A program made the position numbers and the translations under genes. 64,000 bases of DNA, from positions 326,975-390,974 of the forward strand of contig CBFDEM010000022.1 in NCBI GenBank assembly GCA_965603825.1. Direction: 5' to 3'. Numbering within the stretch: the stretch's first letter is position 1; every line of letters begins with the position of its first letter. Positions 7,361-64,000 of the stretch are shown here, one piece after another. This DNA is from Blepharisma stoltei ATCC 30299. Lineage: Eukaryota; Protista; Ciliophora. The notes below the pieces were generated by a model that had not been told where the DNA came from, did no database searches, and saw only the letters and a list, made by a program, of their open reading frames with translations.

Positions 7361-9175
7361 TTAAATTCTTTCTCCTTGGATATTGTCCCATTTTGAAATA
7401 AGCTGGCTTATAGTATCATTTACTTGGATGTTTGACTTCGCAAGAGCTCTTAATTCTTCTAGATCAATATTCTTCAACATCTCGTTCATATCCAGTTTCT
7501 TAGTCAAAAATTCGATTTTAGCTTTCAATTCTTGATTTTCCTGGGCTAAATGTTTGCTGTCCCTTACATCTTTTTCTATATCATTTATAAGGACCTTATT
7601 TCTATCTTCGAAAACTCTGATTTTGAATTGTGTATCCTTTAAGTCACTTTCTAAATTCATTCCTTTTTGCTTCAATATTTTTACATCTTCTTCTAAGACT
7701 TCTGATTTTCCTTTAATTTCTGCTGTGTCATAAGTCAGTTGATTTTTTATTTCAATGAGTTCGTTATTTTCATTGATTTTTATTTTTAGGTTATCCATAT
7801 GGTATTGAGAGTCTCTCCTTGCATCTTCTACATTTTGATTGGCTATACTTAGCTCTTTTTTTTCTCTTTCCTTTAATCTTTTAGTTAGCAATGCTTCTTG
7901 CTGAGTTTTTTCTCTTTCCATATCCATTTTCATGTCTTCTACTTGATTCTGAAGATCTCGTTTATCAGCAGCAGCTTGTCTACAAGCTTTTTCTATCATT
8001 TGTTTGGTATGTTTAAGGGCTTTGATTTTGTTAAGTAAATTATCTCTTTCTAATTCAACTTCTTGCTTCTGGTAATTCAAATACCCCAACCTATCTGACA
8101 AAAATGTCATTGTTGATTGATTTTTTAAGTCTTCTTCCAGTTTAAACTAAATATTTCTTACCAATCTGTCTTGAAGCTCTATAAGCTGCTTGTTTTTTTC
8201 TTCTATTAATTTATTATTAAAAATTTCAGCTTGAGCTACTTTATCTTCTAAAGCCTGGATTTGTGTAGCCTGCCTATCAAGCTTTATACGAGTTTCTGAA
8301 GCATAAGTTTTAGCTAAATCTCTCTCTTTTGTTGACTCACCGAGTTTTTTCGCGCTTTCTTCTTTTTGGAAGATTGTAGCTGTAATAGCTTTTCTATATT
8401 TTTCTCCATCAATATCAAAATGTTCTGTGTCTTCTCTAAGCTTAGCCTGTAATTCGCTTTTATCGTCAATTGCTCTATTTAAATTCGTTTGGAAAGCTTG
8501 ATTTCGGCCCATGAGTTCACGGTTTTCATTTTGCAAAGAATCTATTTTAGCTTCTAAATCTTTTTGAATTTTTTGATACTTGCTTTTGAGCACGACCATA
8601 TTTTCCGTCAAAGGGCCGGCTTCTAGCCCACCCATAAATTTCCCAGCCCTTTCTTTGCTTTGCTCCTTAGTAAGCTTGATCTCCATTTCCAAGTAATAGA
8701 GCTGCTGTTGAAGATTTTTTATGTATTCTTCTTCAATAGGTTTCCCCGTTTCTTGAGGTTTATCGATAAATGTAGTTTTTTTGGTTTTTGTTGCTGAAAA
8801 GCCTTCAAGCTTCGGATCATTTGGAGGTGCTTTACGAACTGAAGGCTGAAGAGGAGGATTTTGCGGGGGTTTTATTTCTTTTGAAGAGCCTGTACGATTA
8901 TAAGCATCAGGATAGCCTATTTGTTGAGACTGTAAATTTGGGTCATTTCTTGGCTGTCGGTCGTAGTTTTGGAAAGTTGATTGAGGATTATAGCGATCTT
9001 GAGATCTTGGGTTAAATAATTCTTTGGTAGATGTAGGGCGAGCATAAGGATCTGAAGGAGGAATTTGTTGGCCTTGAAGAGAGAGATCAGGGCCACGCTG
9101 TCTTTCGAAGCCTTGGAGAGTAGATTGAGAAGGGTTATAGCGATCTTGCCCTCGGTTACTATATCGGCTATCCAT
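7361..9175 (-). CDS. Coiled-coil protein with Q/P-rich N-terminus containing a duplicated ~45-aa repeat; one intron
   Basis: ORFs 8147..9175 and 7361..8110 are joined in frame by removing intron 8147..8161 (DRL|FKLEEDLKNQSTMTF). QDRYNP(S)QST..Q..QQI occurs twice. Confidence 0.85.
8147..8161 (-). other. 15-nt spliceosomal intron GTAAGAAATATTTAG
   Basis: GT..AG with A at -6. Contains an in-frame TAG. Confidence 0.88.
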
Positions 9176-9533
9176 AATTTAAATTGAGTAGAAGAAATAA
9201 TAATTCTTTAAACTTAAAGAAAGTTTATTAATATAGACTGAAAATTAACTACTGCTAGATCGATTTATTGTTTATGATTTTAATTAAACGGTAAAAAAAT
9301 AGTTTTAAATAATCTCAGTTTGTTTTGCGTTTTGATTATTTTCAATTGAATGCTTCATATATTTTATGCTGAATTTTTCAGAATTTAGCCTGATCTTAAT
9401 TTTTTAAAAAGCATAGTAGTTGCATAAGAGCTAATTAGTAAAAATAAATGGAAAATTTTATTGAAAACCATTCATATTTTTATAGTTATATAATGAATTT
9501 GCTGATGATCTAAATGTATGAATTTAATTAAAA

Positions 9534-10856
9534 TTACCCACTAAAAGGCTCGACATATGACTTGCTTTTTTCATAAACCTCATCATATACTTTGATTAAA
9601 TTTCTCCTAATTGTGTTATTGACATAATTAATTTCGAACTCATTTTTTTCTTCATTGTAATCCTTAATCGCCATAAACCCATGATTGAATAAATGCAATT
9701 CCAAATTATTTGCATCAGTCAAAAAAAAATCTTTTTTTTGAAATACATGGTTTTTCCCCCATTTTTTATTCAAAGCTTCTTTAAAATATTCTTGGCTTAA
9801 AATCTCGAAATTCCCTGCAAATTCTTTAATAGGCATCCCATACACGAAATTCTGCTGTAGATAATCTTTCATATATTTAGGAAAACTAAGATTAATTTCA
9901 AAATCGTCAGGATTCCCTTTGCTTAAGTAATTTAAAAATCCTTGAGGATTATATAGTTCTTTATTTTCGCTAGTGAATCTATAACCTCCAAATGCACTTT
10001 TTATGAGACTTTTTATTTGATGTGGTAATAAAGTACTTTGAGACTCATAAAAATTAAGATAATCTCCGAAATTATTCTTTAATTCTTCGTCAGAAAACCC
10101 TAGAATTTGGCTGAAATTTGAATCTAAAGTGATGTCTTTAATTTGGATTTTTTCATGCAAATAAGTTCGAAATCCTATTAGAGAGGTGTTAGTTTTTACA
10201 AAAAATTTTATATTTTCCTCTTTTTCTTTTAAACTTGCTAAAATTTTAGTCAAAATTTCAATTAAATCATTCCTCTTTTTTTGATATTGAATTGTTTCTA
10301 AAGTAATTTTGTCAAAATTATCAATTAAGATAACGACAGGTCCTAGCTTGTCTTTTATGCCTTCTATAAGATTTCCAAACATTTCGTGCACAGGTAAATT
10401 TTTATTTAATTTTATTTGATAAGTTTCAGCTGATTTTTGAAGCAAATTTTTAATCATTTCTGTAAATATTGATACTGTTGCTGGCCGAAACGTGATCCCA
10501 AAGTCATAAAACAGTACTGGAGTTTTTTGGAATAATTCTGGTTTATTAAATATATAAGTTCCATTGAATAAGCTTTGATTTCCTTCAAAAATTTCTTTAA
10601 TTGTTTTCAGTAATAAAGTTTTTCCAAAAGAATCAGGCCGGGAAATTGAATAGAATTTGCCACTTTGTATCATGCTAGCAATTAATGGAGTTTTATCAAC
10701 ATAGATATAGTTGCTTTGACTGAATCTAGAAAATTCATTGCAATTTATTGATATTCTTTTGATTGTCTTAAAATCTGTGCTAAATATTCTTGAATTTGTA
10801 GATGGAATGAGAAGGCTTGGATTTCTTGTGAATTTTTCAAAGGAATGCTTTAGCAT
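9534..10856 (-). CDS. AAA-ATPase-like protein of the bacterial YVDKT/RPRRFGK family (PF09820-like) with a putative mitochondrial presequence
   Basis: NYIYVDKT, SRPDSFGKTLLL, VVILIDNFD, DITLD...ILGFS..EL, GGYRFT...LYNP, LF..GFMAIK. Confidence 0.8.
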   Translation of the reverse strand: MLKHSFEKFTRNPSLLIPSTNSRIFSTDFKTIKRISINCNEFSRFSQSNYIYVDKTPLIASMIQSGKFYSISRPDSFGKTLLLKTIKEIFEGNQSLFNGTYIFNKPELFQKTPVLFYDFGITFRPATVSIFTEMIKNLLQKSAETYQIKLNKNLPVHEMFGNLIEGIKDKLGPVVILIDNFDKITLETIQYQKKRNDLIEILTKILASLKEKEENIKFFVKTNTSLIGFRTYLHEKIQIKDITLDSNFSQILGFSDEELKNNFGDYLNFYESQSTLLPHQIKSLIKSAFGGYRFTSENKELYNPQGFLNYLSKGNPDDFEINLSFPKYMKDYLQQNFVYGMPIKEFAGNFEILSQEYFKEALNKKWGKNHVFQKKDFFLTDANNLELHLFNHGFMAIKDYNEEKNEFEINYVNNTIRRNLIKVYDEVYEKSKSYVEPFSG

Positions 10857-11417
10857 ATTGAAAGAATGTAAGTATTTTATAATTATAAAACATGACAGAT
10901 GATTTAAATATGTCGAAACTTATTTATAGCCAAAACAGACATTTAAAAACATATATTCCGTTGTCTGTGAATGAAAAAAAAGTTCAAAAATCTTATATTT
11001 TAGGCTAGCAAATAAATATTAAGCTACTTCAAATAAATTTTTGATCGCTTGCTAGGTTTTATAAATTAGATTAAAACTTGCTTCAAATTATTGCAAAATA
11101 GAAAAAAATTGCGCGCTCGTTCACAGAGGAGTGGAGTTTAGTTTCCTCAATATATTTATGAAATTAAAGTCGTTTTATTTAATAATTTTATTAAAATATT
11201 TAGGCTGGGTCCAATAAGCAATAAATTGCGCTGGCAAGTATTCATAAAAGGCTTGATGAATTTCTTCTTGTTGAATCTTTTATAAGCAACTATATAAATA
11301 TATTAATTTATATTATTAATAAAAATTTAGACAATTATTTTGATGATAAGTAAGCTAAGCATGCTCATTATTTTACAAAAAATAGCTCCTAATAATTTCA
11401 TATTGCTAAGATATATT

Positions 11418-48342: not shown

Positions 48343-51300
48343 TTAATACGCTTGCTTCACAATAGAAAAATCTTTGGATGCATATTCATCAGAAGCACGA
48401 CTAGGTACGATTTTTGAAAGGGCGGTTTTTGAGAGCTTACCAAATGTAAACGCGAACCTAAATAGATGAGTTGTATCCAGACCTTTTCTTCTATACAGCA
48501 GACTTGGATATTTTTTTCTTTGCACATAAATACCGACAGCACCAATTAAAACCCATCCTATACAAACTAACAGAAATAAAATTAAATAACCTCCTTCAAC
48601 ATTAGATGAGATCGTTGAAAGCACAGAAAGCCATAATACGCCTATTAAGCTTAAGGCTTGCCATCAGCAAAATCTTGGATAATTATAAGGTTTCCATCTA
48701 AATATAAATCCAATATAAGCAGCCATTATGACAGCAAATAAAGCTCCATGAATTGCGCTATCTGCCCTTTTAACTGTTTTATTCATAGCAATAAGTATGA
48801 TTTGGACTACAGATTTAACCATTAAAAATAAAGGAGACGTATAAATGTGCAAATTCATCTGCAACTCTTGCCACAAAGGTCTACAAAATATTGCAAGAGG
48901 CTCATAGCATAAAAGAGCTATAAAAGAAAAAATTGCGTATATTAAATGATTACCCTTTCAGCAAAAATAATAGCAATCTTGAACAAGAAAACTGTCAGTA
49001 AAATCCTCTCCAATAGATTGATCGCACACAAATACATTTAAACACATCGAAATAAACGGAATAAAGCATAAATTACCTAAAATCGGCATTAAATAGTCTG
49101 CAAGTCAAGCTAAAAATCTTAAAAATGATACGCTGGGAAATTTTTCATCCAATCTGAGTAGAATAACAGCGCAAAAAATTAATCAAACGGTAATAGCTCC
49201 ATAGATCCCATCAATTACAATTCAAAATACCCCGTTTTTAAGCTTTAAAGAGTTTTCTAAGTTGAGGGAAAAAGAATTGCTGATTTTTGCTAAGAAGCTA
49301 CTGATTAGAGTTATATCTGGCCCGATCGCTACGAACTGGAAAAATTCAATGCCAATTGTTATCTGAACAATAAAATCTTGCAAAGAAATTTCTTGCCTTT
49401 CTTTAAGTTCTTTTATATTGATATTTCACCACGTTTTTCATATATATGCGGCAGAAACAAAAGAGATTAAAGCAAATCCAAAGCAAATGCCAAAAGCGAG
49501 AATTCTTCCTTTTGTAAACGTCCTTACCAGTTTATCAGAAAAAGGGCATTCGTTATCTTGATTTCTTAGATCTTCCGGCTTCATAGTGGACCCATCTCCA
49601 TAAATAATCGGTATATCAATTGTTAGCATTACGCTGCTATACGGGTGAAATTCTCCTATTTTATAAGCAGTCACATTACCAGAAGCTGCATCTATTTTAT
49701 TAACATTAATATCAAAATTTTCCATAATCCTGTCATTGCTGTCTTTATCAATCGAAAACTTTCCTGTGCATCCAATAAATTTCTGAGCTCTCATTGTCAA
49801 ATTTAGCTGATAAGGATCATAATAGTCAAGTCCTTGATTTATCATCGAATCCAACGCAACCGCTATATAATAAGCTGCATCATAATAATTGCAAGCATAT
49901 GAATAAGGGACTACATTATAAAGAGATGCTATTTTTGAGTACGCAAAGTGTCCAACTTTTCCAACCCAGTTTTGTCCAGAAATAATGATCATCGGAACTC
50001 CTGTATCTTTCACTTTATAAGTATACATAAAATCGTACTCTCCCAATGTAAGAAATAATGAACTTGAAACAAAAATTACGAGATCACCTTTTCTTAGGCC
50101 TAAATCATATAGCTCTTCAAGAACGTAATATAATTCAGGAGGCATAAAGAATAAAGCCAAAAGCCTTGCTTGAGTACTAAAAACTGCTTTCAGTGAATCA
50201 GAATATTTTTTTATGGTGGTTCTATTTAGATTATCAGGGATCTCCCTCAAGCTTTCAGGGTTTAGAATTTCTAAGCCATATTTCTTGGCATTTTCTATAA
50301 GTGTGGAATATGATACCTTGTTTGATGGGTCATCAGAATATAAGACACAGAGTTTATTTCAGCCTAAAACTTTTAAAAAAAGCGAACTCAAAGCAAGTAT
50401 GTAGTCGTTCGAAATGGCGATTCTTGTAAACATAGGATAAAGTGCGGTTGAGCTCAGTGCATGGCCTAATGCTACTGACCCAACGACTGGAATTGTTACA
50501 TTTAAGCTTGTAAAGAGCTTCATTTCTCCAGTTGCTATTACAGAAGCGCTTGATATATGAGCTAATCCAATTTTATCTATATCTTTGGTAAAGCAAGGTC
50601 TGGCAAACTTTTCATCATAATTCAATGTGCCGCAGTCATAAATGAAGTATCTAACTTGGAAATTTTTTAAAATCCCTAATGTGTTGTCATTTATCAAGCT
50701 TCATGCTGTATATGCACCGTTACAAAAAAGGGGTATAGTTGTCATTGGAGGAGTGCCAGGATTAGTCGCACCTCCAGATATTGATACGTGCAATATTTTT
50801 TTGTCTGATTTTGGCGCATTATGAGTATTTCCAGGGAAAATTAAATTTTTTACTATTTTTACTTCTCCATCAAAGACTGAGCCAATGATTTCTCTTTTCC
50901 CCTCCTGAATATTAATGATAGAAAATTGATTTTTCTGGCTATATCCTTTCATTAAATATCTTATTTCTTCAGCTGTCACTGGCTCTGCCGTGCTATTAAA
51001 TAAATATTGCAATAAATTTTCAGTTGATTTAAATAAAAATTCCTTTTGAGAGCTTGCATATTCTTGGCCTTTTACAGTGATTATAATTGCTCCATCAATT
51101 TTGCAATCGTAACCACTGTTTTGATTTAAAATTAATCCATCTCCTTCCAGTAGAAGTTTTTTGGATTTCAATGATTCTTGAATTATCGATGAGAGAACAG
51201 AATTTGTAAAAATGTAATACAAAGTAGTGCCTAAAGGCTTGATAACCCGATTTACTAAGCTTTCTATGTTTGTAAATGACTCTACAGCTAAATAATTAAA

Positions 51301-51813
51301 AGTTGCTGAATATTCTAAAAATTCGTTTTTATTGTATATATTATCTTCGTCAGCAATTACAAGTCCTTGAGTCCAGTTAAAGTAATCTAAAACTGTAAAA
51401 TATGCATTCATTTGAGCTGAATGAGAAGTGACGATGTTGTAAGTCCATTTGTCATGGTATAAAGACTCATACCTTCTCTGAGGAACCAAGTGGATTTTCT
51501 TGTTTTCTTCACATAATTGAGAAAGGCTTAATTGTATTTCAAAATCGTCTGATAAATCAAGGACGATTAAAGTATCAGGATAAATATTGAGACACTCTGA
51601 AATTGCTGAATGGTTACAGTGATGTCAGTCAATAATTAAATTGAATTGGTTTTTTATTTCCTTGATCCAATTTTCGCTGGCTATGTTTTTATTATTTTGG
51701 GCAATAATAATATCAGCTGAAGAAGATAAGTTTAGCATAGATAACAAACATAATATCTTAACGAATCCTATGCCAGAAATGCCTTGCTTTTTTTTTGCTG
51801 ATTTTTTATTCAT
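48343..51813 (-). CDS. Intact receptor-like membrane protein: signal peptide + tandem Venus-flytrap (ANF-receptor/PBP1-like) domains + ~8-9 TM helices (~1156 aa)
   Basis: Six track ORFs fall in one frame joined only by TGA=Trp. YFTVLDYFNWTQ, LINDN..ILKNFQV...DC, LSSTALYPMFTRI, LGWNKLCVLYSDD, YYDAAYYIA, FIGCTGKFSIDKDSNDR. The second Met (51813, MNKK) is the start conserved among paralogues; an alternative ATG lies at 51837. Confidence 0.85.
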
Positions 51814-52831
51814 TTTAGTATTAGAGTTGTAATTCATTTACAAAAATCTGAAAGTTTAAAATTTGTATGTATAAGAAGATGTATACCCATAAAATAAATA
51901 TATTAAAGTTAATAAGTAAACTCAAATCAATAATAGCAAACATATTTCAAATTGAATTTTCTTATTTTCAAATTTTTATATACTAATAAAATATTAAACA
52001 TAAATTATTTAAAACTTTTAATTTCCCAGAAATGATAGAGAAGCTAAACATCATTTTAAGATAATATTTTTGGTAATTAATTTATAATTAGTTATCAGAG
52101 AGCTCAGAATCTTTATCTTGACTGATTTTATATTTTAATATAATCATAAATGAAAAGCAAAGTTTATATATATGATCAGCATAATTTTAATAATAATTTC
52201 AATTTTGCACTGGTAAAATAAATTATTAAAAATATTTATTTTTAGAAAAAGCTGTTATATAAATAAATAATCGAATCAAAACTATATTTATCCCTTCAAA
52301 TTCAACAGCAACTTCTAACTATTAATTTTAAATAAGAATTACATTCTCTACAAATAGCTTATGCATATCCAACTTACTATAAGTATTTTTGCTCTAAGGA
52401 TATTATGTAAAACTGAAGATGAACTTTTAGGCTTGCTACTTATAAGGCTCTATAAATTTTTCTTAGAGTGCTGCTGAGTAGGGTCAACAGAATTTAAATC
52501 TAGAGGTTTAGATTAATTTTCAAGCTAATGAAAAAGTATGGTAAACTAATTCATGGCTTAAAAAGGTTTTTGAGGAGCTATTTAGACTTAGACACAATGT
52601 GAGCTGATGGAAACATTATGTTTCAGATGATAGGGAGATTAATGGCGTATCAGAAAATCTGAAAAGCTTTGATATTAAATTTTACTGTGCTTAATAATCT
52701 ATAAAAGCTTATCTTTATAATAATGCAAGGATGAGATTATTACTATATATGAGCATGGCTATGCATTCATTTTAGATCGCTTTATTTCGAAATTGAATTA
52801 AAAATTAATTAATAAGTATAATTTGATAAAC

Positions 52832-53998
52832 ATGCTTGAAAATCATTTGAATTGGCTAGAAAAAGGCAAAAGTTGCTTAGAAGAAAATAAACCAAACGAA
52901 GCACTAGAATGCTATGAAGAAGCAATTAAGTTAAAACCCAACGATTCTAGAGGATACAAAGGCAAAGGTAACGCTCTTAAGGCTTTAGATGAAAATGATG
53001 AGGCTTTAAAATGCTATAGCAAAGCAATTAAACTCAAACCTGATGATCCTGAAGCTTACAATGGCAAAGGTACAGCTCTTAATAATTTAAAAGACAATAT
53101 CAAAGCAATAAACTCATATAATAAAGCAATAAAACTCAAACCTGACTATGCTGAAGCTTATTATAACAAAGGGAATGCTCTTGGTGATTTAGAAAAGTTC
53201 ACTGAAGCAATAAAATCCTTTAATAAAGCAATAAAACTCAATCCTAATTATGCTGAAGCTTATAATGGTAAAGGCAACGTCCTTAGTGATTTAAACAGAA
53301 ATTCTGAGGCAATCGGATGCTTTGACGAAGCTATTAAACTCAAGCCTGGCTATGCAAATTCTTACAATAATAAAGGGAATGCTCTTTTAGAATTAGGAAA
53401 ATATGAAGAAGCCATAGAATGCTACGATGAAGCACTTAAGCTAGAACCTGATGATGCTTATACTTACTATAATAAAGGCAACGCTTTTAATGATTTAGGC
53501 AAAAAAGTTGAAGCAATAGAATGCTATGATAAAGCAATCAATATAGAGCCTGACTATGCAGAAGCCTATTTCGATAAAGGTAAAGCTCTTTATGACTTAG
53601 GTAGAGCACCCGAAGCAATTGAATGCCATGATAAAGCTATTGGCCTCAACCCTGAGCATGCGGCTGCTTACTGTAATAAAGGGGATGCTCTATTTAAGCT
53701 ATGCAGATATCCTGAAGCAGTAGAATGCTATGATGAAGCAATAAAGATCGACCCTAACTATGGTTATGCTTATTTCAATAAGGGTTCAGCTCTTTATGAA
53801 TTAGGCAGAAATGATGAAGTTATGGAATTGTTTGACAAGGCAATTGAACTCAATCCAGAAGAGCCTGATTATTACTTCAATAAAGGTACAGCTCTCTATG
53901 CATGAAAAAGATTTGATGAAGCAATCATATGCTTGAATAAAGCAATATACTTAATCTATCCTTATAAATTGCATCAGAATGCAATATCATTTGTATAA
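52832..53998 (+). CDS. Tetratricopeptide repeat protein (about 10-11 tandem TPRs, no other domain)
   Basis: 34-aa periodicity AYYNKGNAL..L.K..EAIECYDEAIKL.P. Reads through TGA 53903 to TAA 53996. Confidence 0.92.
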
Positions 53999-54074
53999 AC
54001 TACATTTGGTAGGTTCCTCAAATCAATATTATCCTAATTCATTCTCATTAAACAATTAATATTAGCTTTCTTAG

Positions 54075-54794
54075 CTAGTATTTTTTTAATTTCACATGAG
54101 AATTTTTGCTTAGCAATATTCCATCTCCTCTTGATAGGAGTTTTCTGGATTTCAATGTCTCTTGAATTTTTGATGAGAGAACAGAATTTGCAAAAATGTA
54201 ATACAATGTTGCTCCTAAAGGCTTGATAACTCTGCTTACGACCTTTTCAAGGCTTGCCGATGTTCCTATAGTTATATAATCAAAAGTCTCCGAATAGTCT
54301 AGAAATTTCTGCTTGATATATGTATGATCTCTATCAGTGATTAAAAGCCCTTGAGTTCAATTAAAGTAAGCTAAAGCCGCAAAATATGCATCAGCTTGGG
54401 CTATGTTTGATGGAAGGATATTATATGTCCATTCGTCGTCGTAAAGAGACTCTTGATTCTTCTGAGGAACCAAATGAATTTTATTATTTTCTTTACATAA
54501 TTGAGAAAGGCTCAGTTGTGTCTCAAAGCTGTTTGATAAATCAAGAACGATTATGGCATTTGGATGTGAGTTAACACACTCTGAAATTATCAAGTAGTTG
54601 CATTGATACCATTCGATAGCTGGCTCAAATTGCTTTTTTGTGTCTTCAATCCAAATTTGATTAAGCTCATCTCTATCATTTTGAGCAATAATAATTTCAA
54701 ATGAAGAGCACAAATTGAGAATTGCTAAAAAAAATAATATCTTTATAAATCCGATATCAGAAAAATTGTTAGATATTTTAGCCTTTTTGTTCAT
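54075..54794 (-). pseudogene. Truncated but open N-terminal fragment of a divergent receptor paralogue (signal peptide + part of the first VFT-like domain)
   Basis: MNKKAK...IGFIKILFF...LSQLCKENNKIHLVPQ...YFNWTQG...VIKPLGATLYYIF...GDGILL. Homology ends near 54100, followed by TAG. Confidence 0.75.
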
Positions 54795-54950
54795 TTTTTT
54801 TTACTAAGCAAAAATGAAAATTCTGATTTATTATTTTTATATGGAAATAGTTAAACTTATTTATAAGACAAACTAATTCTATCCCTACTATGTAAAAATA
54901 CAAGAAAATTTATTTGGTACCTCAAAAAAAGTTTGAGTCTTATAAATATA

Positions 54951-55121
54951 ACAAATGAGTTATAGCATCCCTTCTCATTCAGCTCAAATGAATGCATATT
55001 TTGCAGTTTTAGATTATTTCAACTGGACTCAGGACTTATAATTACTGACGAAGATAGCATATACAATAAAAAGAATTTTAAAATATTCAGCAGCTTTTTA
55101 TTATTTAGCTGTAGAGTCATT
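54951..55121 (+). pseudogene. Short inverted fragment of the receptor family
   Basis: TCTCATTCAGCTCAAATGAATGCATATTTTGCAGTTTTAGATTATTTCAACTGGACTCA matches the reverse complement of ~51280-51450, with frameshifts. Confidence 0.85.
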
Positions 55122-55209
55122 GGCAAACGCTTAGCCAGCAGCAGCGGGCCTACCTCTTCTGAAACTTGAAACAAGAAGGCCTTAATCTTTAATAATTTGA
55201 TCCTTCTTT

Positions 55210-55457
55210 ACAAACCCTATGCCAGAAATGGCTTGCTTCTTTTTTGCTAATGCTTTATTCATTTTTTTATTAGAGTTTTAATTCATTTACAAAAATCTGA
55301 AAGTTTAAAACATTTTATATATACAAGAAGAATTATGCAAACAGCTAATATAGAAATATATAGTGTTTCAAATATCTCTATGGATTAAATATCTGCTTGA
55401 TACATAAATTTCATTTTCCATTTTAGGAGAAATCGTATTAAGAAGTTCTGACATATT
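55210..55457 (-). pseudogene. Receptor-family 5' end plus upstream region (paralogous to 61750-61992)
   Basis: CAAACCCTATGCCAGAAAT...ATTTACAAAAATCTGAAAGTTTAAAA...TTTAGGAGAAATCGTATTAAGAAGTTCTGACATATT. Confidence 0.85.
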
Positions 55458-55490
55458 TTTCAATATTGATATGTCAAAACATTTCTGGTT

Positions 55491-56062
55491 CTAAGCAAAT
55501 TTGCCTAAACTTTGTATGCTTTTCGATGTGTCTACAGCTAAATAATTAAAAGTTGCTGAATATTCTAAAAAATATTTTTTATTGTATACGTTATCTTCGT
55601 CAGTAATTACAAATCCTTGAGTCCAGTTGAAATAATCTAAAACGGCAAAATATACATTTATTTCATCTGAATGAGAAGGGGCGATGCTATAAGTCCATTC
55701 GTCATAATATAAAGACTCATACCTTTTTTGAGGAACGAAATGGATTTTCTTGTTTTCTTCACATAATTGAGAAAGGCTCATTTGTATTTCAAAATCGTCT
55801 GATAAATTAAGGATGATTAAAGTGTCAGGATAAATATTGAGGTACTCTGAAATATTTGAATTATTGCAATGATGTTAGTCTATAATTAATTTGAGTTCTT
55901 TTTTTATTTACTTGACTCAATTTTTGCTGGTTATGGTTTTATCATTTTGGGCAATAATAATATCAGTTGAAGAAGATAAATTTAGCATAGATAGAAAATA
56001 TAATATCTTAACGAATCCTATGCTAGAAATGCCTTGCTTCTTTTTTGCTGAGTTTTATTCAT
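55491..56062 (-). pseudogene. N-terminal receptor-family pseudogene fragment
   Basis: Closely similar to ~51260-51813, with a TAA replacing the Trp after IID and truncation after YLAVDTSKSIQSL. Confidence 0.85.
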
Positions 56063-56609
56063 TTTTGTATAGAGTTTTAATTCATTTGCAAAAAATGAAA
56101 GTTAAATAACTTTTTTATATATAAGAAGAGATATGCTTATAAAATAAATATTAGTTGAAAGCATACTTGCAAACGCAGAAACTTATGATAGCATTTTAAA
56201 TTCTTTTGCTCAAAATAAATTTATCGAATTTCTTGAAAATATCAAAGCCTGCATTAATTAGTTCCATTTTTATCAGATTCCTTAAAGAATTAATAAATCA
56301 ACACTATAAATTTGACATATTCTACATTGAATTTATTCAAGTTTTTTATGATACTGATAGAAGATTAATTATATAATTTATTTAATTTGAGTTTAAGACT
56401 TTTTAATCTTTATCCTTTTTCCTTAATCTAGAAAATATTTTTGCGCACCAGAAAGGGATATTTTGAATTCTGACAGATGAAGTTTTCAAGGCTATTTTAT
56501 TTTAGCCAGTTTTATGCTAAGGAAGTAAGCAGGAATTTATTTTAACATATTTATTTTGAGGCATACGTTTTCATAAATATAAAAAGTTTTAAACTTTCAG
56601 ATTTTTGTG

Positions 56610-59517
56610 AATGAATTACAACTCTAATACTAAAATGGATAAAAAATCAGCAAACAAAAAAGCAAGGCATTTCTGGCATAGGATTTGTTAAGATATTATG
56701 CTTTCTAATATTGATGGAGCAATTATAATCACTATAAAAGGTCAAGAATATGCAATCTCTTAAAGGGATTATTTATTCAAATCAACTGAAAATTTATTAC
56801 AATATTTATTTAATCGCACGACGGAGCCAGTGACAGTTGAAGAAATAAGATATTTAATGCAGAAATATAGCCAAAAAAGTCAATTTTCTATCATTAATAT
56901 TCAGGAGGGTAAAAGAGAAGTCATTGGCTCAGTCTTTGATGGAGAATTAAAAATAATAAAACAATGAATTTTCCCTGGAAACACTGATAATGTGCCAAAA
57001 TCAGACCAAAAAATATTGCACGTATCAGTCTCTGGAGGCTCTACTAATCCTGGCACTCCTCCAGTGATAATAATACCCATTTTTTGCCACGGTGCATATA
57101 CAGCATGAAGGCTGGTAAATGACGGCACATTAAGGATTTTAAAAAATTTCCAAGTAAGGGACTTCACTTTTGACTGCGGGGCATTGAATTATGATGAAAG
57201 TTTGCGAGACCTTGCTTTACCAAAGATATAGATAAAATTGGATTAGCATATATATCAACCTCTTCTGCATTATCTATTGCAGAAATGAAGCTCTTTTCAA
57301 GCTTAAATTTAACGATTCCATGGTTGGGATGACACCATTAGACGATGCACTGGGCTCAACCGCACTTTATCCTATGTTTACAAGAATCCCTGTTGCGAGC
57401 AACTACGTACTTACTTTAATTTCGCTTTTAATTAAAGTTTTAGACTGGGGTAAACTCTGTGTCTTATATTCTAAAGATACATCAAATAAATCAGCATATG
57501 CCGCACTTATAGAAAATATCAAGGAATTTGGCTTAGAAATTCTAAACGCTGAAAGTTTGAGGGGCATCCCTGATAATCTAAACAGAACCACTATCAAGCA
57601 TTATACCAGCTCATTTCAAGCAGTCATTGATACACAAGCAAGGGTTTTGGTTTTATTATTTATGCTTCCTGAAATATATTACGCTCTTGAAGAGCTGTAT
57701 GATTTAGGCCTGAGAAAAGGTGATCTCGTAATTTTTGTTACAGGCCCATTGTTTCTTACAATGACACAGTACGATTTTATATATACTTGTAAGCTTGAAG
57801 AAACAGAAGTTCAGATGATCGCTATTTCTGGACAAAGCTGGGTTGGAAAAGTTGGACAATTTGCTTACTCAAAAATAGAATCTCTTTATGGTGCTGCCCC
57901 TTATCAATATGCTTGTAATTACTATGATGCAGCTTATTATATAGCAGTTGCGTTGGATTATATGATAAATCAAGGACTTGATTATTATGATCCTTATCAG
58001 CTAAATTTGACTCTGAGAGCTCAGAGATTTACTGGATGCACAGGAAAGTTTTCGGTTGATAAAGACAGCAATAATAGGATTATGGAAAATTTTGACATTA
58101 GCGTTAATAAAATAGACGTAACTTCTGGTAATGTGACTGCTTATAAAGCAGGAGAATTTCACCCTTATAGCAGCATAATGCTAACTATTGATGTGCCGAT
58201 TCTTTATGGAGATGGGTCTACTATAAAGCCGGAAGAATTAACTCGGTATGAATAAGCCATAGATTTTTTTATTTTCCTATCGTAAGCGAGAAAAATTGTC
58301 TTCCTAAGAAATAAAGATAATGAATGCCCTTTTTCTAGTAAGCTGATAAGAACGTTTACAAAAGGAAGAATTCTCGCTTTTGGCATTTGTTTCGGATTTG
58401 CTTTACTTTCTTTTATTTCTACTGCATATATGAAATATCAATATAGAAGAACTTAAAGAAAGGCAAGAAATTTCGTTGCAAGATTTTATTGTCCAGATAA
58501 CAATAGGTATTGAGTTTTTCCAGTTTATAGCGATGGGGCCAGATATAACTCCAATCAGTAGCTTCTTAGCAAAAATCAGCAATTCTTTTTCCCTCAACTT
58601 AGAAAACCATTTTAAGCTTAAAAATTGGGTATTTCGAATTGTAATTGATGGGATTTATGGAGCTATTATCGTGTGATTATTTTTTGCACTGTTATTCTAC
58701 TCAGATTAAATGAAAAAAATTCCCCTGAGTGTCATTTTTAAGATTTTTAGCTTGACTTGCTGACTATTTAATGCCGATTTTAGGTAATTTATGCTTTGTT
58801 CCGTTTATTTCGATGTGTTTGAATGTGTTTGTGTGCGATCAATCTATTGGATAGGATTTCACTGACAGTTTTCTTGTTCAAGATTGCTATTATTTTTGCT
58901 GAAAAGGTGATCATTTAATATATGCGATTTTTTCTTTTATAGCTCTTTTATGCTATGAGCCTCTTGCTATATTTTGTAGACCCTTGTGGCAAGAATTGCA
59001 GTAGAATTTGCACATTCATACGTCTCCTTTATTTTTAATGGTAAAAACTGTAGTCCAAATCATACTTATTGTCATGAATAAAACAGTCAAAAGAGCAGAA
59101 AGCACAGTCCATGGAGCTTTATTTTCTATTATAATGGCTGTGTGTATTGGATTTATATTTAGATGCAAGCCTTATAACTATCCAAGATTTTGCTGATGGC
59201 AAGCCTTAAGCTTAATAGGTGTATTATGGCTTTCTGTGCTTTCAGCAATCTCATCTAGTGTTGAAGGAGGCTATTCCATTTATTTTCTATTAGTTTGTAT
59301 AGGATGGGTTTTAATTGGTGTTATCGGTATTTATGTACAAAGAAAAAAATATCCAAGTTTGCTGTATAGAAGAAAAGGTCTGGATACAACTCATCTATTT
59401 AGATTCGCGTTTACATTTGGAAAGCACTCGAAAAACGCCCTTTCAAAAATCGCACCTCGTCGTGGATCTGAAGAGCTTTCATGCATAGATTTTTCTGATG
59501 TTAAGCAAGCTTATTAA
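56610..59517 (+). pseudogene. Inverted near-full-length pseudogene copy of the receptor gene
   Basis: Colinear with the reverse complement of 48343..51837. Lesions: ~0.6-kb deletion near 56705, TAA at 56761, frameshifts near 57200 and 58430, 66-bp insertion 58239-58304, TAG near 59002. Confidence 0.9.
58239..58306. mobile_element. 66-bp TA(A)-bounded insertion, candidate unexcised internal eliminated sequence (IES)
   Basis: Absent from the intact paralogue at 49561-49580. TAA direct repeats at 58239 and 58305. Excision leaving one TA restores the in-frame PEELRNKDNECPF. Confidence 0.5.
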
Positions 59518-59597
59518 ATAATAAAATTTATTAAAACTTACCTCTGAATTACTTTAATTTATATGAATGCTATAATTGAATAGTGATATAAAGAGTG

Positions 59598-60110
59598 TTA
59601 TTTTATGCCATCGAAGAGCTTTATGATGTGGGCTTAAGAAAAGGAGTTATTTTTGCTACAAATCAAGAAATGTTTCATACAATACCAGACGACATTATTG
59701 ACTTATTAAAGATTAAGGAAACTAGAGTTTCAATGATGGCTGTTAGTGGGCGAAATTGAGTAGGTAAGGTTGGGGAATTTGCTTACTCGCAGATAGCATC
59801 TAGATATAATGGCGTCATATTTGCCCTCACTTGCTCTAGTTATGATACAGCAATTTAATAGGCATAGCAAGGACTACATGATAAACCAAGGATTTGATTA
59901 TAATGATCCTTACCAAATAAATTCGGCAATCAGAGTTCAAAAGTTTAATGGGTGCACAGGAGTAGTTACTATTGAAAAAAATGACAGAGCTATCAGCATT
60001 TTTGATATAATGGCCAGCAAAATAGATAAAATTTCTAGAAATGTGACAGCATACAAAATGGCTGAATTTCGTGCATATGGTTGCACAATTTTGAGCATTA
60101 AACTCCTTCA
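59598..60110 (+). pseudogene. Fragment of a more diverged receptor paralogue (second VFT-like domain)
   Basis: LFYAIEELYDVGLRKG, W(TGA)VGKVGEFAYS, DYMINQGFDYNDPYQIN, QKFNGCTG, NVTAYK. Frameshifted. Confidence 0.8.
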
Positions 60111-60424
60111 TTAGAATTTCATTGCATAATTCTATGGCTTTTTTTTTTACCTAATTGATAAATTTCCAAATTATAATTATTAATTTTATAATGTTTTTAA
60201 TAGAAATTTACCTTGCTCAACCACTTGACTAAAGTAAAACCACTTGAAAATCCTATTAAAAATGATTCTGCTAATGGCACAAAAAGTTGATGCAAGCAGT
60301 GAGCCAGGCTCCTATTATCGCCTGTCGTAGAAACTAAAAACGATCCTTAAGTCACTGAAGCTACAAAGATGCCCTATTGCCCTATTATATAGCTTCTGGA
60401 TAGTATTCTAAACAAAGAGAATTA

Positions 60425-60910
60425 GCTTAATCAATGCTATTAAGAGCATGCCCTTTATTTCAGTAGTAGTCTACATTATCTGGATTAATTCTAATTGCAT
60501 CACTAAAATATTCAATTGCTTCTTCATGTTTGTTTTCTTCTGCCAGCAGTTCACCTTTCTATTCTATGCTCTATCTTCATTTTGATCTACTCTAATAAAT
60601 TCTTTAAGAATCTTATTCCTTCTCTCTTCCTCCCAAGCTACAAAGAATACGTGCTTTATTCTCAAAATAAGTAGCATATTCTGAATTAATTTTAATTGCA
60701 TCATTAAAATATTCTAGTAGTAATAAAGCTTCTCCTATTAGATCATATAATCCATCTCTGTTTGGGCCAACTTTAATGCTGATTTTCAGCACTCCATAGC
60801 CTCTTTATATTTATCTACTTTAAAAGCACGTCGCATTTATACAAGTAATAGACTGCTTTACTTGGATTAATTCTGATTGCCTCATTTCAATTCTTTATTG
60901 CTTCTTCATG
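60425..60910 (-). pseudogene. Degenerate TPR-repeat gene
   Basis: Minus strand reads HEEAIEYFSDAIRINPDNVDYYWNKGHAL and HEEAIKNWNEAIRINPSKAVYY, with stops and frameshifts. Confidence 0.75.
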
Positions 60911-60912
60911 AT

Positions 60913-61801
60913 AGAAAATTGATTGTTTTGATGATATTCCTTCATTAAGTATCTTATTTCTTCAGCTGTCTCTGGCTCTATCATGCGATTAAATAATTAC
61001 TGAAATAAATTTTAAGTTGATTTAAATAAAAATTCCTCTGTCGAGCTTGCATATTCTTGACCTTTTATAGGATTATAATTGCTCCATCAATTTTGCAACC
61101 ATAACCACTGTTTTGATTTAAAATTAACCTATCTCCTTCCAGTAGAAGTTTGTTGGACTTCAATGCTTCTTGGATTATCGACGAGAGAACAGAATTTGTA
61201 AAAATGTAATACAAAGTAATGCCTAAAGGCTTGATAGCCTTACTAAATTTTGTATGCTTGTTGATGACTCTACAGCTAAATAATTAAAAGTTGCTGAATA
61301 TTCTAAAAATTCGTTTTTATTGTATACGTTATTTTCGCCAGTAATTGCAAGTCCTTGAGACCAGTTAAAGTAATCTAAAACTGAAAAGTATGCATTCATT
61401 TGAGCTGAGTGAGAAGGAAAAATGCTGTAATCCATTCGTCATCGTATAAAGACTTATACTTTTTCTGAGGGACCAAATGGATTTTCTTGCTTTCTTCACA
61501 TAGTTGAGAAAGACTCAGTTGTATTTCAAAATCGTCTGATAAATCAAGGACGATTAAAGTATCAGAATAAATATTGAGGCGCTCTGAAATTGCTATGTAA
61601 TTGCAATAGTGCCAATCTATAACTGAGTCTAATTGTATTTTTCCTTCATTAAGCCAGTTTTGACTGCCTTTATTTTTATCACTTTAGACAATAAGAATAT
61701 CAATAGAGGAAGACAGATTTAGCATAAATATGAAATATAATATCTTTACAAACCCTATGCCAGAAAATGCCTTGCTTCTTTTTTGCTGGCTTTTTTTTCA
61801 T
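60913..61801 (-). pseudogene. Telomere-proximal N-terminal receptor-family pseudogene
   Basis: Colinear with ~50920-51813. Small indels (near 61765, 61430, 61240), truncated against the TPR remnant. Confidence 0.85.
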
Positions 61802-61990
61802 TTTTTGTATTAGAGTTTATTTACAAAATCTGTAAGTTTAATAACTTTTTTATATATAATAAGACTGATGCAGGATATGAATAATATAGAAATGCATAGT
61901 GTTTCAAATATCATTATGATTAAATATCTGTTTGATTCATAAATTTCATTTTCTATTTTAGGAGAAATCATATTAAGAAGTTCTGACATA

Positions 61991-64000
61991 TTAGGGTGTT
62001 AGGGTGTTAGGGTGTTAGGGTGTTAGGGTGTTAGGGTGTTAGGGGTGGTTAGGGTGTTAGGGTGTTAGGGTGTTAGGGTGTTAGGGTGTTAGGGTGTTAG
62101 GGTGTTAGGGTGTTAGGGTGTTAGGGTGTTAGGGTGTTAGGGTGTTAGGGTGTTAGGGTGTTAGGGTGTTAGGGTGTTAGGGTGTTAGGGTGTTAGGGTG
62201 TTAGGGTGTTAGGGTGTTAGGGTGTTAGGGTGTTAGGGTGTTAGGGTGTTAGGGTGTTAGGGTGTTAGGGTGTTAGGGTGTTAGGGTGTTAGGGTGTTAG
62301 GGTGTTAGGGTGTTAGGGTGTTAGGGTGTTAGGGTGTTAGGGTGTTAGGGTGTTAGGGTGTTAGGGTGTTAGGGTGTTAGGGTGTTAGGGTGTTAGGGTG
62401 TTAGGGTGTTAGGGTGTTAGGGTGTTAGGGTGTTAGGGTGTTAGGGTGTTAGGGTGTTAGGGTGTTAGGGTGTTAGGGTGTTAGGGTGTTAGGGTGTTAG
62501 GGTGTTAGGGTGTTAGGGTGTTAGGGTGTTAGGGTGTTAGGGTGTTAGGGTGTTAGGGTGTTAGGGTGTTAGGGTGTTAGGGTGTTAGGGTGTTAGGGTG
62601 TTAGGGTGTTAGGGTGTTAGGGTGTTAGGGTGTTAGGGTGTTAGGGTGTTAGGGTGTTAGGGTGTTAGGGTGTTAGGGTGTTAGGGTGTTAGGGTGTTAG
62701 GGTGTTAGGGTGTTAGGGTGTTAGGGTGTTAGGGTGTTAGGGTGTTAGGGTGTTAGGGTGTTAGGGTGTTAGGGTGTTAGGGTGTTAGGGTGTTAGGGTG
62801 TTAGGGTGTTAGGGTGTTAGGGTGTTAGGGTGTTAGGGTGTTAGGGTGTTAGGGTGTTAGGGTGTTAGGGTGTTAGGGTGTTAGGGTGTTAGGGTGTTAG
62901 GGTGTTAGGGTGTTAGGGTGTTAGGGTGTTAGGGTGTTAGGGTGTTAGGGTGTTAGGGTGTTAGGGTGTTAGGGTGTTAGGGTGTTAGGGTGTTAGGGTG
63001 TTAGGGTGTTAGGGTGTTAGGGTGTTAGGGTGTTAGGGTGTTAGGGTGTTAGGGTGTTAGGGTGTTAGGGTGTTAGGGTGTTAGGGTGTTAGGGTGTTAG
63101 GGTGTTAGGGTGTTAGGGTGTTAGGGTGTTAGGGTGTTAGGGTGTTAGGGTGTTAGGGTGTTAGGGTGTTAGGGTGTTAGGGTGTTAGGGTGTTAGGGTG
63201 TTAGGGTGTTAGGGTGTTAGGGTGTTAGGGTGTTAGGGTGTTAGGGTGTTAGGGTGTTAGGGTGTTAGGGTGTTAGGGTGTTAGGGTGTTAGGGTGTTAG
63301 GGTGTTAGGGTGTTAGGGTGTTAGGGTGTTAGGGTGTTAGGGTGTTAGGGTGTTAGGGTGTTAGGGTGTTAGGGGTGTTAGGGTGTTAGGGTGTTAGGGT
63401 GTTAGGGTGTTAGGGTGTTAGGGTGTTAGGGTGTTAGGGTGTTAGGGTGTTAGGGTGTTAGGGTGTTAGGGTGTTAGGGTGTTAGGGTGTTAGGGTGTTA
63501 GGGTGTTAGGGTGTTAGGGTGTTAGGGTGTTAGGGTGTTAGGGTGTTAGGGTGTTAGGGTGTTAGGGTGTTAGGGTGTTAGGGTGTTAGGGTGTTAGGGT
63601 GTTAGGGGTGTTAGGGTGTTAGGGTGTTAGGGTGTTAGGGTGTTAGGGTGTTAGGGTGTTAGGGTGTTAGGGTGTTAGGGTGTTAGGGTGTTAGGGTGTT
63701 AGGGTGTTAGGGTGTTAGGGTGTTAGGGTGTTAGGGTGTTAGGGTGTTAGGGTGTTAGGGTGTTAGGGTGTTAGGGTGTTAGGGTGTTAGGGTGTTAGGG
63801 TGTTAGGGTGTTAGGGTGTTAGGGTGTTAGGGTGTTAGGGTGTTAGGGTGTTAGGGTGTTAGGGTGTTAGGGGTGTTAGGGTGTTAGGGGTGTTAGGGTG
63901 TTAGGGTGTTAGGGGTGTTAGGGTGTTAGGGTGTTAGGGTGTTAGGGTGTTAGGGTGTTAGGGTGTTAGGGGTGTTAGGGTGTTAGGGTGTTAGGGTGTT
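61991..64000 (+). repeat. Telomere, about 250 copies of TTAGGGTG (CCCTAACA on the C-strand)
   Basis: Near-perfect 8-bp tandem array to the window end, with the G-rich strand running towards the terminus. This is the heterotrich (Blepharisma/Stentor) telomeric unit. Confidence 0.98.

Follow-up and report, generated by a model that had tools for sequence, protein, structure and literature searches.

Broken receptor paralogs at a curated contig end of the Blepharisma stoltei macronuclear genome

One end of contig C22 in the Blepharisma stoltei macronucleus (MAC) genome, in which TGA encodes tryptophan, most probably carries birth-and-death debris of a dying subfamily, made up of subtypes A and B, within a very large receptor family. 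The window, the whole stretch of 64,000 nucleotides analysed, contains one intact receptor gene (g1) and eight broken relatives (P1 to P8) near its end. The initial annotation had offered two accounts of these sequences, a recombination-driven zone of receptor diversification and simple debris. The latter is supported by the decay of the pieces and by the lack of recent conversion tracts, whereas the former is not supported, given the anatomy of the pieces, their decay, the decay of an unrelated gene in the same zone and the lack of a recent tract into g1. Receptor diversity in this organism comes from gene number rather than from an archive.

Layout of the contig end

The features discussed below are, in window coordinates:

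48343..51813, minus strand: g1, intact subtype-A receptor gene, 1156 amino acids, a single ORF with TGA read as tryptophan
51609..51714, minus strand: nt 100-206 of g1 (codons 34-69, 105 bp), an old mosaic tract common to g1 and P4
52832..53998, plus strand: intact TPR-repeat gene, unrelated to the receptors (Pfam TPR_1, E 4e-94)
54075..54812, minus strand: P1, subtype-B 5' piece, codons 1-227, 88-90% identical to the B genes on contig C59
54871..55128, plus strand: P2, subtype A, covering codons 94-183, with four frameshifts
55147..55204, minus strand: foreign DNA after the stub P3, found in the MAC assembly only here and at C59:25418-25476
55205..55494, minus strand: P3, subtype-A promoter and first 19 codons
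55505..56151, minus strand: P4, 5' part of a subtype-A gene (codons 1-187) with two stops and one frameshift
56415..56521, plus strand: P8, a 107-bp subtype-B remnant from the TM region (codons 840-876) with two stops
56535..59590, plus strand: P5, inverted near-complete subtype-A copy, 87-89% identical to g1
58239..58304, plus strand: 66-bp IES-like insertion within P5, with a TAA at either end, retained in the assembly
59598..60107, plus strand: P6, subtype B, from within the second VFT (codons 554-729), with two frameshifts
60360..60905, minus strand: TPR pseudogene with many stops (tblastn E 1e-7 to the TPR gene)
60905..61992, minus strand: P7, subtype-A promoter and codons 1-301, four frameshifts and three stops
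61993..64000, plus strand: telomeric 8-bp repeat (GGGTGTTA) at a curated contig end (PMC9942806)

The intact gene had been correctly delimited as one open frame on the minus strand, for which an alternative in-frame ATG upstream at 51837 is possible. All seven pieces originally listed, in both orientations, were recovered by tblastn/blastn (E 1e-15 to 0), but P8 (83-84% identical to the C59 B genes, E 3e-27) had been overlooked. The piece placed at 56610-59517 is present but is actually a near-complete inverted copy, P5, with a ~640-bp deletion (nt 68-712, codons 23-237), five further frameshifts, three stops and the 66-bp insertion; together with g1 it forms a 3-kb inverted repeat.

Subtype A comprises P2, P3, P4, P5 and P7, which are 83-88% identical to g1 at the nucleotide level (86% for P7), and subtype B comprises P1, P6 and P8, which are 60-71% identical to g1 and 80-88% identical to the intact B gene on C59 (82-86% to the B genes for P6). 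The promoter part of P3 is 92% identical to C59:11435-11728. The two subtypes are old, being ~72% identical to each other, and all pieces differ pairwise by more than 10%, which together rule out a single inverted duplication; the claim that divergence argues against one duplication holds, but the spread it drew on mostly reflects the two subtypes. As had been noted, the pieces are biased toward the 5' end, five of the eight lying within the first 300 codons. The 5' flank and start are kept in P1, P3, P4, P5 and P7, and only P5 and P6 cover the second VFT. The promoter of P7 is cut by the telomere, while homologous DNA runs further at 55205-55494 and on C59.

Receptor pieces make up 6.7 of the 7.9 kb of the terminal stretch before the telomere, where long-ORF cover drops from 0.79 to 0.34. 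The zone is not given over to one family alone: an intact TPR gene and a TPR pseudogene lie inside it, the latter fused directly onto the broken end of P7. The TPR gene family is itself large and likewise frequent near contig ends. The telomeric repeat does stand at the contig end, but its position has to be read with caution because ends in this assembly were hand-trimmed at repeat-like ‘cruft’ and then supplemented with a telomere read (PMC9942806 SI) and because the genome contains ~47,000 scattered alternative sites of telomere addition (PMC9942806). ‘Subtelomeric’ has little meaning in this assembly.

Receptor architecture and family size

The g1 product consists of a signal peptide, a short first Venus-flytrap (VFT)-like domain, a canonical second VFT and ~9 TM helices, with PF01094 matching both ectodomain halves (E 0.0019 and 1.5e-8). 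Family-level structure was taken from a paralog standing in for g1 (P0004, 45% identical to it; model pLDDT 89.9). The second ectodomain module has a VFT fold (VIA-align Z 35-37, rmsd 2.7-4 Å over ~380 residues), and HMM matches to taste and glutamate receptors reach E 1e-18. The family thus carries the VFT ligand-binding domain of class C GPCRs, a fold held in common with mGluR, GABA-B, CaSR and T1R and with other VFT receptors such as NPR and the ATD of iGluR/GLR. Unlike class C GPCRs, it has two tandem VFT modules and ~9 predicted TM helices that do not match the seven-helix bundle, and PF00003 (7tm_3) was absent from 8 full proteins and 40 TM regions at E<=1. Searched as part of longer models, the TM part gave no significant PDB match, and a weak lead points to TRP-like PF06011 clusters (score 0.82-0.86). 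Judging by the fold, the most likely product of g1 is a chemoreceptor at the cell surface, which would bind small solutes in its VFT cleft. The second VFT is the most divergent domain of the receptor, and dN/dS, compared between regions as earlier proposed, is higher in the ectodomain (0.25-0.33) than in the TM region (0.18).

At least 150 members belong to the family, most of them arranged in tandem clusters (~56), and its paralogs range from 25 to 90% identity, indicating many copies of graded age. Intact or broken status was read directly on C59, C55, part of C21, the left end of C22 and C53: 10 of 13 copies are intact on C55, as are 6 of 6 on C21, the left end of C22 and C53. Fragment density at the locus described here is far higher than in the other arrays examined. 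The enrichment proposed for telomeres was seen for contig ends, in that 15 of 40 clusters lie within 30 kb of a contig end, against 5.6 expected (p<1e-4), but this measure is partly circular, as contig ends were curated at repeats and telomere addition occurs genome-wide. No ciliate paper on a double-VFT, ~9-TM receptor family was found in the literature, and the family is apparently undescribed in ciliates. Its combination of a double VFT with a non-GPCR ~9-TM bundle makes it of greater interest than the C22 locus itself.

Junctions and germline order

Short-read contigs from an independent run (X2) span the P1/P2, P2/P3, P4/P8/P5 and P5/P6 junctions with 0 mismatches; the bridging ends at 60020 and does not extend to the P3/P4 joint or to the joint made by the P5 deletion. 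Because mismatch-free contigs span these four junctions, the 54.8-59.8 kb interval is not a gross mis-assembly, a possibility the initial annotation had raised. The head-to-head P1/P2 joint is also spanned by contigs of run X6 with 0 differences. Single-base deletions of P2 are reproduced, and two runs show 4 bases at 56293 that are missing from the assembly. Three further read joints (54230-55505, 55310-56113 and 57784-59712) were rejected as paralog cross-mapping, each linking homologous positions.

At the DNA level, members of the A/B subfamily occur nowhere but at the present end of C22 and at either end of C59. C59 holds ~11 more broken A/B copies, and a full-length frame is kept in 2 of the ~21 A/B copies or pieces. 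The break point of P3 and the DNA downstream of it are the same as at C59:25147-25476, and a joint resembling P1-P2 also occurs at C59:60539-60593. Adjacency of the right ends of C22 and C59 in the germline was considered and rejected, as homology ends at C59:64832. An ADP/ATP-carrier-like remnant is present at the C59 end.

The germline-like run X6 is collinear with the assembly save for IES-type insertions, seen in this run only, at 54805, 56006, 56518 and 57781. Within P4, the insertion is a 469-bp IES whose 7-bp direct repeat lies at 56006-56012, and within P5 it is a 178-bp IES at 57781-57785. Twenty-eight letters of the insertion at 56006 align to 55169-55196, and the foreign DNA at 55147-55204 is probably the stranded end of the IES that the germline version of P4 carries at gene nt 58. 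From the apparent break inside an IES and the collinearity of X6, we infer that the pieces were rearranged in the germline and not during MAC development. A break seemingly inside an IES, which strands normally eliminated DNA in the somatic genome, is a small mechanistic detail. The 66-bp insertion retained in P5 has a TA-containing terminal direct repeat and the size of a Blepharisma IES, the first IES size peak lying near 65 bp (PMC9942856). An X2 joint (58238-58305) skips exactly those 66 bases, although g1 or the C59 A copy, whose flanks are 85-92% identical, is a possible source of it.

The C59 layouts suggest descent from an ancestral unit in which an A and a B gene stood head-to-head with ~600 bp of promoter in common, which would account for the mixed orientations and promoter-proximal bias of the pieces. 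Blocks were copied between C22 and C59 after they had been broken, which is shown for P3 and suggested for P1-P2. The X6 insertions suggest that the pieces are collinear in the germline, with at least one break inside an IES. Most of the broken copies went on to collect stops, indels and excess amino-acid change. Paralogs do exchange tracts now and then, as members of tandem families generally do, and nothing indicates that the pieces have fed sequence into g1. At this rearrangement-prone contig end, the locus is a well-resolved example of how a large receptor family turns over, its head-to-head pairs breaking, being copied between loci and decaying.

Decay, exchange and alternative readings

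Most pieces carry stops or frameshifts. Their indels are deletions of 1-14 bp or 28-157 bp, or single-base insertions; tiny introns were rejected as the cause of the frameshifts, as no 15-16-nt insertion is among them. Lineage dN/dS is 0.48-0.95 for P2, P4, P5, P6 and P7 (0.51 for P5, 0.95 for P6 and 0.48 for P7) and 0.26-0.36 for g1 and the intact C59 gene B1. Pseudogenes under relaxed selection therefore stand beside genes under purifying selection, the pattern of birth and death, and selection has not kept the pieces usable as donor frames. The exception is P1, an open frame of 240 codons with 0 stops, 0 frameshifts and a lineage dN/dS of 0.33. In X8, a run whose RNA nature is guessed and whose contigs carry neither strand nor level, exact pieces of P1 and the letter pattern of g1 are present, P5 is matched at lower depth than P1, and P3, P4 and P8 are unmatched.

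Sequence comparison shows past ectopic exchange among paralogs, in the form of the junctions shared with C59, one old mosaic tract and an identical run between B1 and B2. In the mosaic tract, g1 is 84% identical to P4 but 67-71% identical to other A copies, to which it is 86-92% identical at nt 206-560 (AU p=1e-4; permutation p=2e-4 and 1e-3). The tract is no more identical than its flanks, two P4 stops inside it are missing from g1, and a g1+P4 clade outside it is compatible with the data (AU p=0.47). On C59, the intact B1 and its frameshifted neighbour B2, both near-complete, share a 187-bp identical run (p=0.003). The predicted recent conversion from fragments into g1 did not appear: the longest identical runs of the pieces with g1 are 31-63 bp (shuffle means 22-58), and no g1 fragment was significant after correction in a GENECONV-type scan of one strain assembly, where recent polymorphic conversions are invisible. 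In run X12, inferred to be a second strain, 8% of words are present and mapping reaches 92-96% in patches. A mosaic of P5 and the C59 copy in the 3' half of g1 (triplet p=4e-4) was rejected, with outgroup-informative sites giving no support and a PHI-like p=0.12; the triplet signal may stem from deletions in the C59 copy.

Several observations sit uneasily with debris. The g1/P4 tract is real and, with the B1/B2 run, indicates that DNA can pass between intact genes and copies that are broken or close to it; fragment density here exceeds that of other arrays; and P1 combines its open frame and purifying-level dN/dS with apparent transcripts. It is improbable, however, that the pieces form a conversion archive of silent donors patching the g1 ectodomain in the manner of VSG, msp2 or vls. 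Their 5' bias, a mosaic tract directly after the signal peptide, the apparent end enrichment of the family, the faster-evolving ectodomain and the stock of broken homologues (8 here and ~11 on C59) fit such an archive, but one old conversion in the common ancestor of g1 and P4 suffices for the tract without a fragment donor, as that clade is not rejected outside it. The tract is moreover only 84% identical, P4 stops are absent from g1, and long identical tracts were not found. The pieces retain their promoters and signal peptides, most of them lack the second VFT, and they are not promoterless variable cassettes; most are decaying, as is the TPR pseudogene in the same zone, and a free-living ciliate with at least 150 copies would have no evident need for single-site switching. 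Similarly improbable is a broader form in which broken end copies act as germline donors patching intact chemoreceptor genes, with the g1/P4 and B1/B2 traces as its marks, and alternative telomere addition picks copies for each somatic minichromosome. To our knowledge, archive-fed receptor diversification is known only from parasites and vertebrate immunity; were an archive present here, it would extend pseudogene-fed receptor diversification beyond them.

A function for the pieces themselves is unlikely. P1 could encode a secreted 240-aa half-domain decoy or modulator, consistent with its frame, dN/dS and exact X8 match, but a recent truncation yields the same pattern, P1 stops ~2/3 through the first domain, and the RNA status of X8 is guessed. 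Alternatively, P1/P5 transcripts or the g1/P5 inverted repeat could give rise to silencing RNA; P5 is matched in X8, and RNAi-type control of subtelomeric surface genes is known in Paramecium (PMC4235209). An artefact, through collapsed repeats or imprecise somatic rearrangement, is very improbable: hand-curated ends abut repeat-like cruft, the 4 bases at 56293 are missing and the last 2 kb before the telomere lie outside the read check, but the independent run spans four junctions without mismatch, the P2 deletions recur, X6 is collinear besides its insertions, and the pieces are too different from one another (>10%).

The birth-and-death model is familiar from olfactory-receptor and yeast subtelomeric families, with which this family shares tandem clusters, apparent end enrichment, intact members alongside pseudogenes, copying of segments from one end to another and occasional paralog conversion. 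Unlike in the subtelomeric model, the Blepharisma telomere is somatic and one of many alternative sites, and breakpoints may fall inside IESs. As in the VSG archive, Anaplasma msp2, Borrelia vls and chicken Ig pseudo-V genes, broken paralogs lie near an intact surface gene at a chromosome end; unlike in those systems, the C22 pieces show no recent tracts, are not cassettes and mostly decay, and neither a single expression site nor immune selection is evident. The SAg genes of Paramecium tetraurelia include subtelomeric members and intrachromosomal germline duplicates, their telomere position is set by MAC fragmentation, and pseudogene-donor conversion, which would lend the archive a ciliate precedent, has been put forward for them as a hypothesis (PMC4235209). 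SAg products, however, are coat proteins with periodic Cys residues whose expression is mutually exclusive, whereas the Blepharisma receptors are multi-pass VFT proteins.

Decay of a receptor subfamily

The locus at the right end of contig C22 is quite likely real and germline-encoded, the graveyard of a receptor subfamily that is dying out, formed by duplication, ectopic rearrangement and decay; this reading draws on one strain, contig-level read evidence, small substitution counts and intact or broken status from arrays read directly. The contig belongs to the 41,464,486-bp, 64-contig macronuclear (MAC) assembly of strain ATCC 30299 (PMC9942806). The window ends in the telomere repeat GGGTGTTA, and TGA read-through is needed before long frames appear in it. 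Its intact receptor gene, g1, is as follows:

48343-51813, minus strand: g1, a single 1156-aa frame encoding a signal peptide and 8-9 hydrophobic segments

PF01094 matches both ectodomain halves of g1. Structure was inferred through a model of P0004, a paralog 45% identical to g1 (90-sequence alignment; pLDDT 89.9), in place of the whole g1 protein. The model contains two alpha/beta modules and nine long membrane helices, and in structure comparison the second ectodomain module scores Z 35-37 against Venus-flytrap (VFT) domains. Because the membrane part matched neither 7tm_3 nor any other Pfam domain, and nothing significantly in the PDB, the receptor is not assigned to the class C GPCRs; TRP-like clusters provide a weak lead. 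The double-VFT family extends beyond this genome: metagenomes and an MMETSP transcriptome contain full-length relatives (25-30% identical, including P0009, P0013 and P0104). g1 is probably transcribed, since in a putative RNA run (X8) two contigs differ from the near-complete piece P5 by the same number as g1 does, and all eight listed letter changes are g1 letters.

Sequence searches confirmed all seven broken pieces of the initial annotation and added an eighth at 56415-56521. The pieces sort into two subtypes, ~72% identical to each other. Subtype A (P2, P3, P4, P5, P7) is 83-88% identical to g1, and subtype B (P1, P6, P8) is 80-88% identical to B1, the intact gene at C59:16768-20220. In a genome search at the DNA level, this A/B subfamily occurs only in the window and at both ends of C59, a 67-kb contig with one intact subfamily gene amid ~11 broken copies and stubs. 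The reported switch to one family near the telomere holds for the receptor pieces but is not exclusive, as the TPR family is interspersed with them, represented by one intact gene and one pseudogene.

dN/dS was calculated from substitutions private to each copy, whose counts are small for short pieces: 0.26-0.32 for g1, 0.36 for B1, 0.48 for P7, 0.51 for P5, 0.59 for P2, 0.70 for P4 and 0.95 for P6. In-frame stops occur in P4, P5, P7 and P8, and frameshifts in P2, P4, P5, P6 and P7. The exception is P1, with a 240-codon open frame, a dN/dS of 0.33 and an exact X8 match, a state that fits both recent truncation and a short functional product. Other receptor arrays read directly are intact in 10 of 13 cases on C55 and 6 of 6 elsewhere, and internal arrays on C38, C53 and C63 also give family matches with internal stops. 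Heavy decay is a feature of the A/B subfamily.

Three further observations concern C59. A subtype-B pseudogene at 7556-11053 (L001-L002) has gained a single base at 13 sites and lost one at 3, and when read in register it contains no in-frame stop; either its mutation spectrum is unusual or the assembly is locally in error. A B-type copy carries a 279-bp AT-rich insertion at 62806-63085 (L007), unique among the loci compared; it is possibly a retained IES (a germline insertion normally removed from the MAC), and no clear TA repeat was identified in it. A decayed ADP/ATP-carrier-like gene, spotted by eye in translation, lies at ~65000-66000 on the minus strand (L007), just before the telomere.

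Archive or debris

Of the two options first proposed, a pseudogene archive and birth-and-death debris, debris is the one supported; likeness to VSG-type archives is confined to layout, and three defining tests of such archives came out negative. Conversion analyses cover one strain. A GENECONV-type permutation scan yielded no g1 fragment significant after correction, and no piece shares more than 63 consecutive identical bases with g1, the maximum being that of P7 (shuffle mean 36; p=0.017, uncorrected for eight tests). At nt 100-206 (counted from the gene start), g1 and P4 are 84% identical, and each is 66-71% identical to the other three A copies; at nt 206-560, g1 is 86-92% identical to all the A copies compared. 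This mosaic tract is robust: a grouping of g1 with P7 and the C59 A copy is rejected within it (AU p=1e-4), and its clustering holds in a permutation with variable sites kept in place (p=1e-3). One old conversion in the g1/P4 ancestor would be enough to account for it, because g1-P4 similarity in the tract is not above that of its flanks, the P4 tract has two stops absent from g1, and a g1+P4 clade is not rejected outside it (p=0.47). On C59, the grouping of B1 changes along the gene, from another B copy, D, in the middle (bootstrap 100) to B2 in its 3' part (bootstrap 98), and B1 and B2 share a 187-base identical run:

C59, beside B1: B2, a full-length copy with one frameshift

Judged from these alignments, exchange among paralogs exists; they do not demonstrate the proposed directed flow of fragments into an expressed gene.

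Origin and germline status of the layout

The ancestral unit would have been a head-to-head A/B pair, because a ~600-bp block with B upstream back to back with A upstream occurs three times on C59:

C59:11056-11728, B/A upstream block
C59:16186-16751, B/A upstream block
C59:24840-25419, B/A upstream block

Such an ancestor would explain the mixed orientations and 5' bias of the pieces. Stub P3 and C59:25147-25476 descend from a single break, copied afterwards: both are interrupted at the same base, gene nt 58, and run on into a shared stretch of foreign DNA, found at no other place in the MAC assembly. P4 carries an IES, seen in run X6, at gene nt 52-58, where P3 breaks, and the end of this insertion aligns over 28 letters with the foreign DNA after P3. 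On the simplest reading of this one short alignment, a germline break within the ancestral IES would have left its left end stranded after P3. P1/P2 and a C59 pair at 60539-60593 have a common 5' flank and a near-identical head-to-head junction, with a subtype A partner in the window and subtype B on C59; a relationship, requiring a later partner swap, is suggestive only. Three A pieces terminate within 12 bases of nt 900, with different neighbors.

Mis-assembly had been raised as a concern. Within the region compared (up to 60020), short-read contigs of run X2 cover 54772-54997, 54973-55308, 55749-56685 (one 4-base gap) and 59544-59760 without mismatches, thereby crossing four piece junctions. 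Compared with the assembly, two of the short-read runs carry an additional four bases at 56293. We infer that X6 is MIC-rich from its size (83 million letters versus 44-55 million for other runs) and its four-run study, the germline paper describing four gradient fractions. X6 contigs are collinear with the window apart from four insertions, which appear to act like IESs:

~54805, X6 insertion
56006-56012, X6 insertion of 469 bp with a 7-bp direct repeat
~56518, X6 insertion
57781-57785, X6 insertion of 178 bp

This collinearity makes it very likely that the pieces are germline sequence and not products of MAC development. X12, which shares its study with the best DNA runs and is probably a second strain, contains only 8% of 54000-61900 words and maps in patches at 92-96% identity, which hints at fast turnover between strains.

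Position at contig ends

Genome searches place the receptor family at ≥150 members. Both ends were located for 22 contigs. Of the 40 clusters on these, 15 lie ≤30 kb from a contig end (5.6 expected, p<1e-4), and 10 of 33 when C22, C59 and C23 are left out (3.0 expected). The clusters are enriched at contig ends, but these ends are curated: assemblers cut them at repeat-like sequence and then attached a telomere read (PMC9942806), so repeats there are partly expected. Telomere addition sites are spread throughout the genome (PMC9942806), and therefore no locus is a fixed subtelomere. By inspection, a cytosolic TPR family likewise accumulates near ends. The telomere interrupts the P7 promoter, homologs of which run on elsewhere.

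The TPR family (compare 52832-53998) has many matches ≤20 kb from the ends of C12, C13, C18, C19, C24, C26, C32, C42, C63 and C64. A different 8-mer repeat, TTTATAAC / GTTATAAA, lies outside the normal telomere repeat at C59:66992-67423 (L007) and C22:7-326 (L016); no mention of it was found in the supplement of PMC9942806, and either a variant telomere or a base-calling artefact in the attached read could account for it. C1:1-35000 and C23:1-35000 are seemingly one block, with identical match scores offset by ~15 bp.
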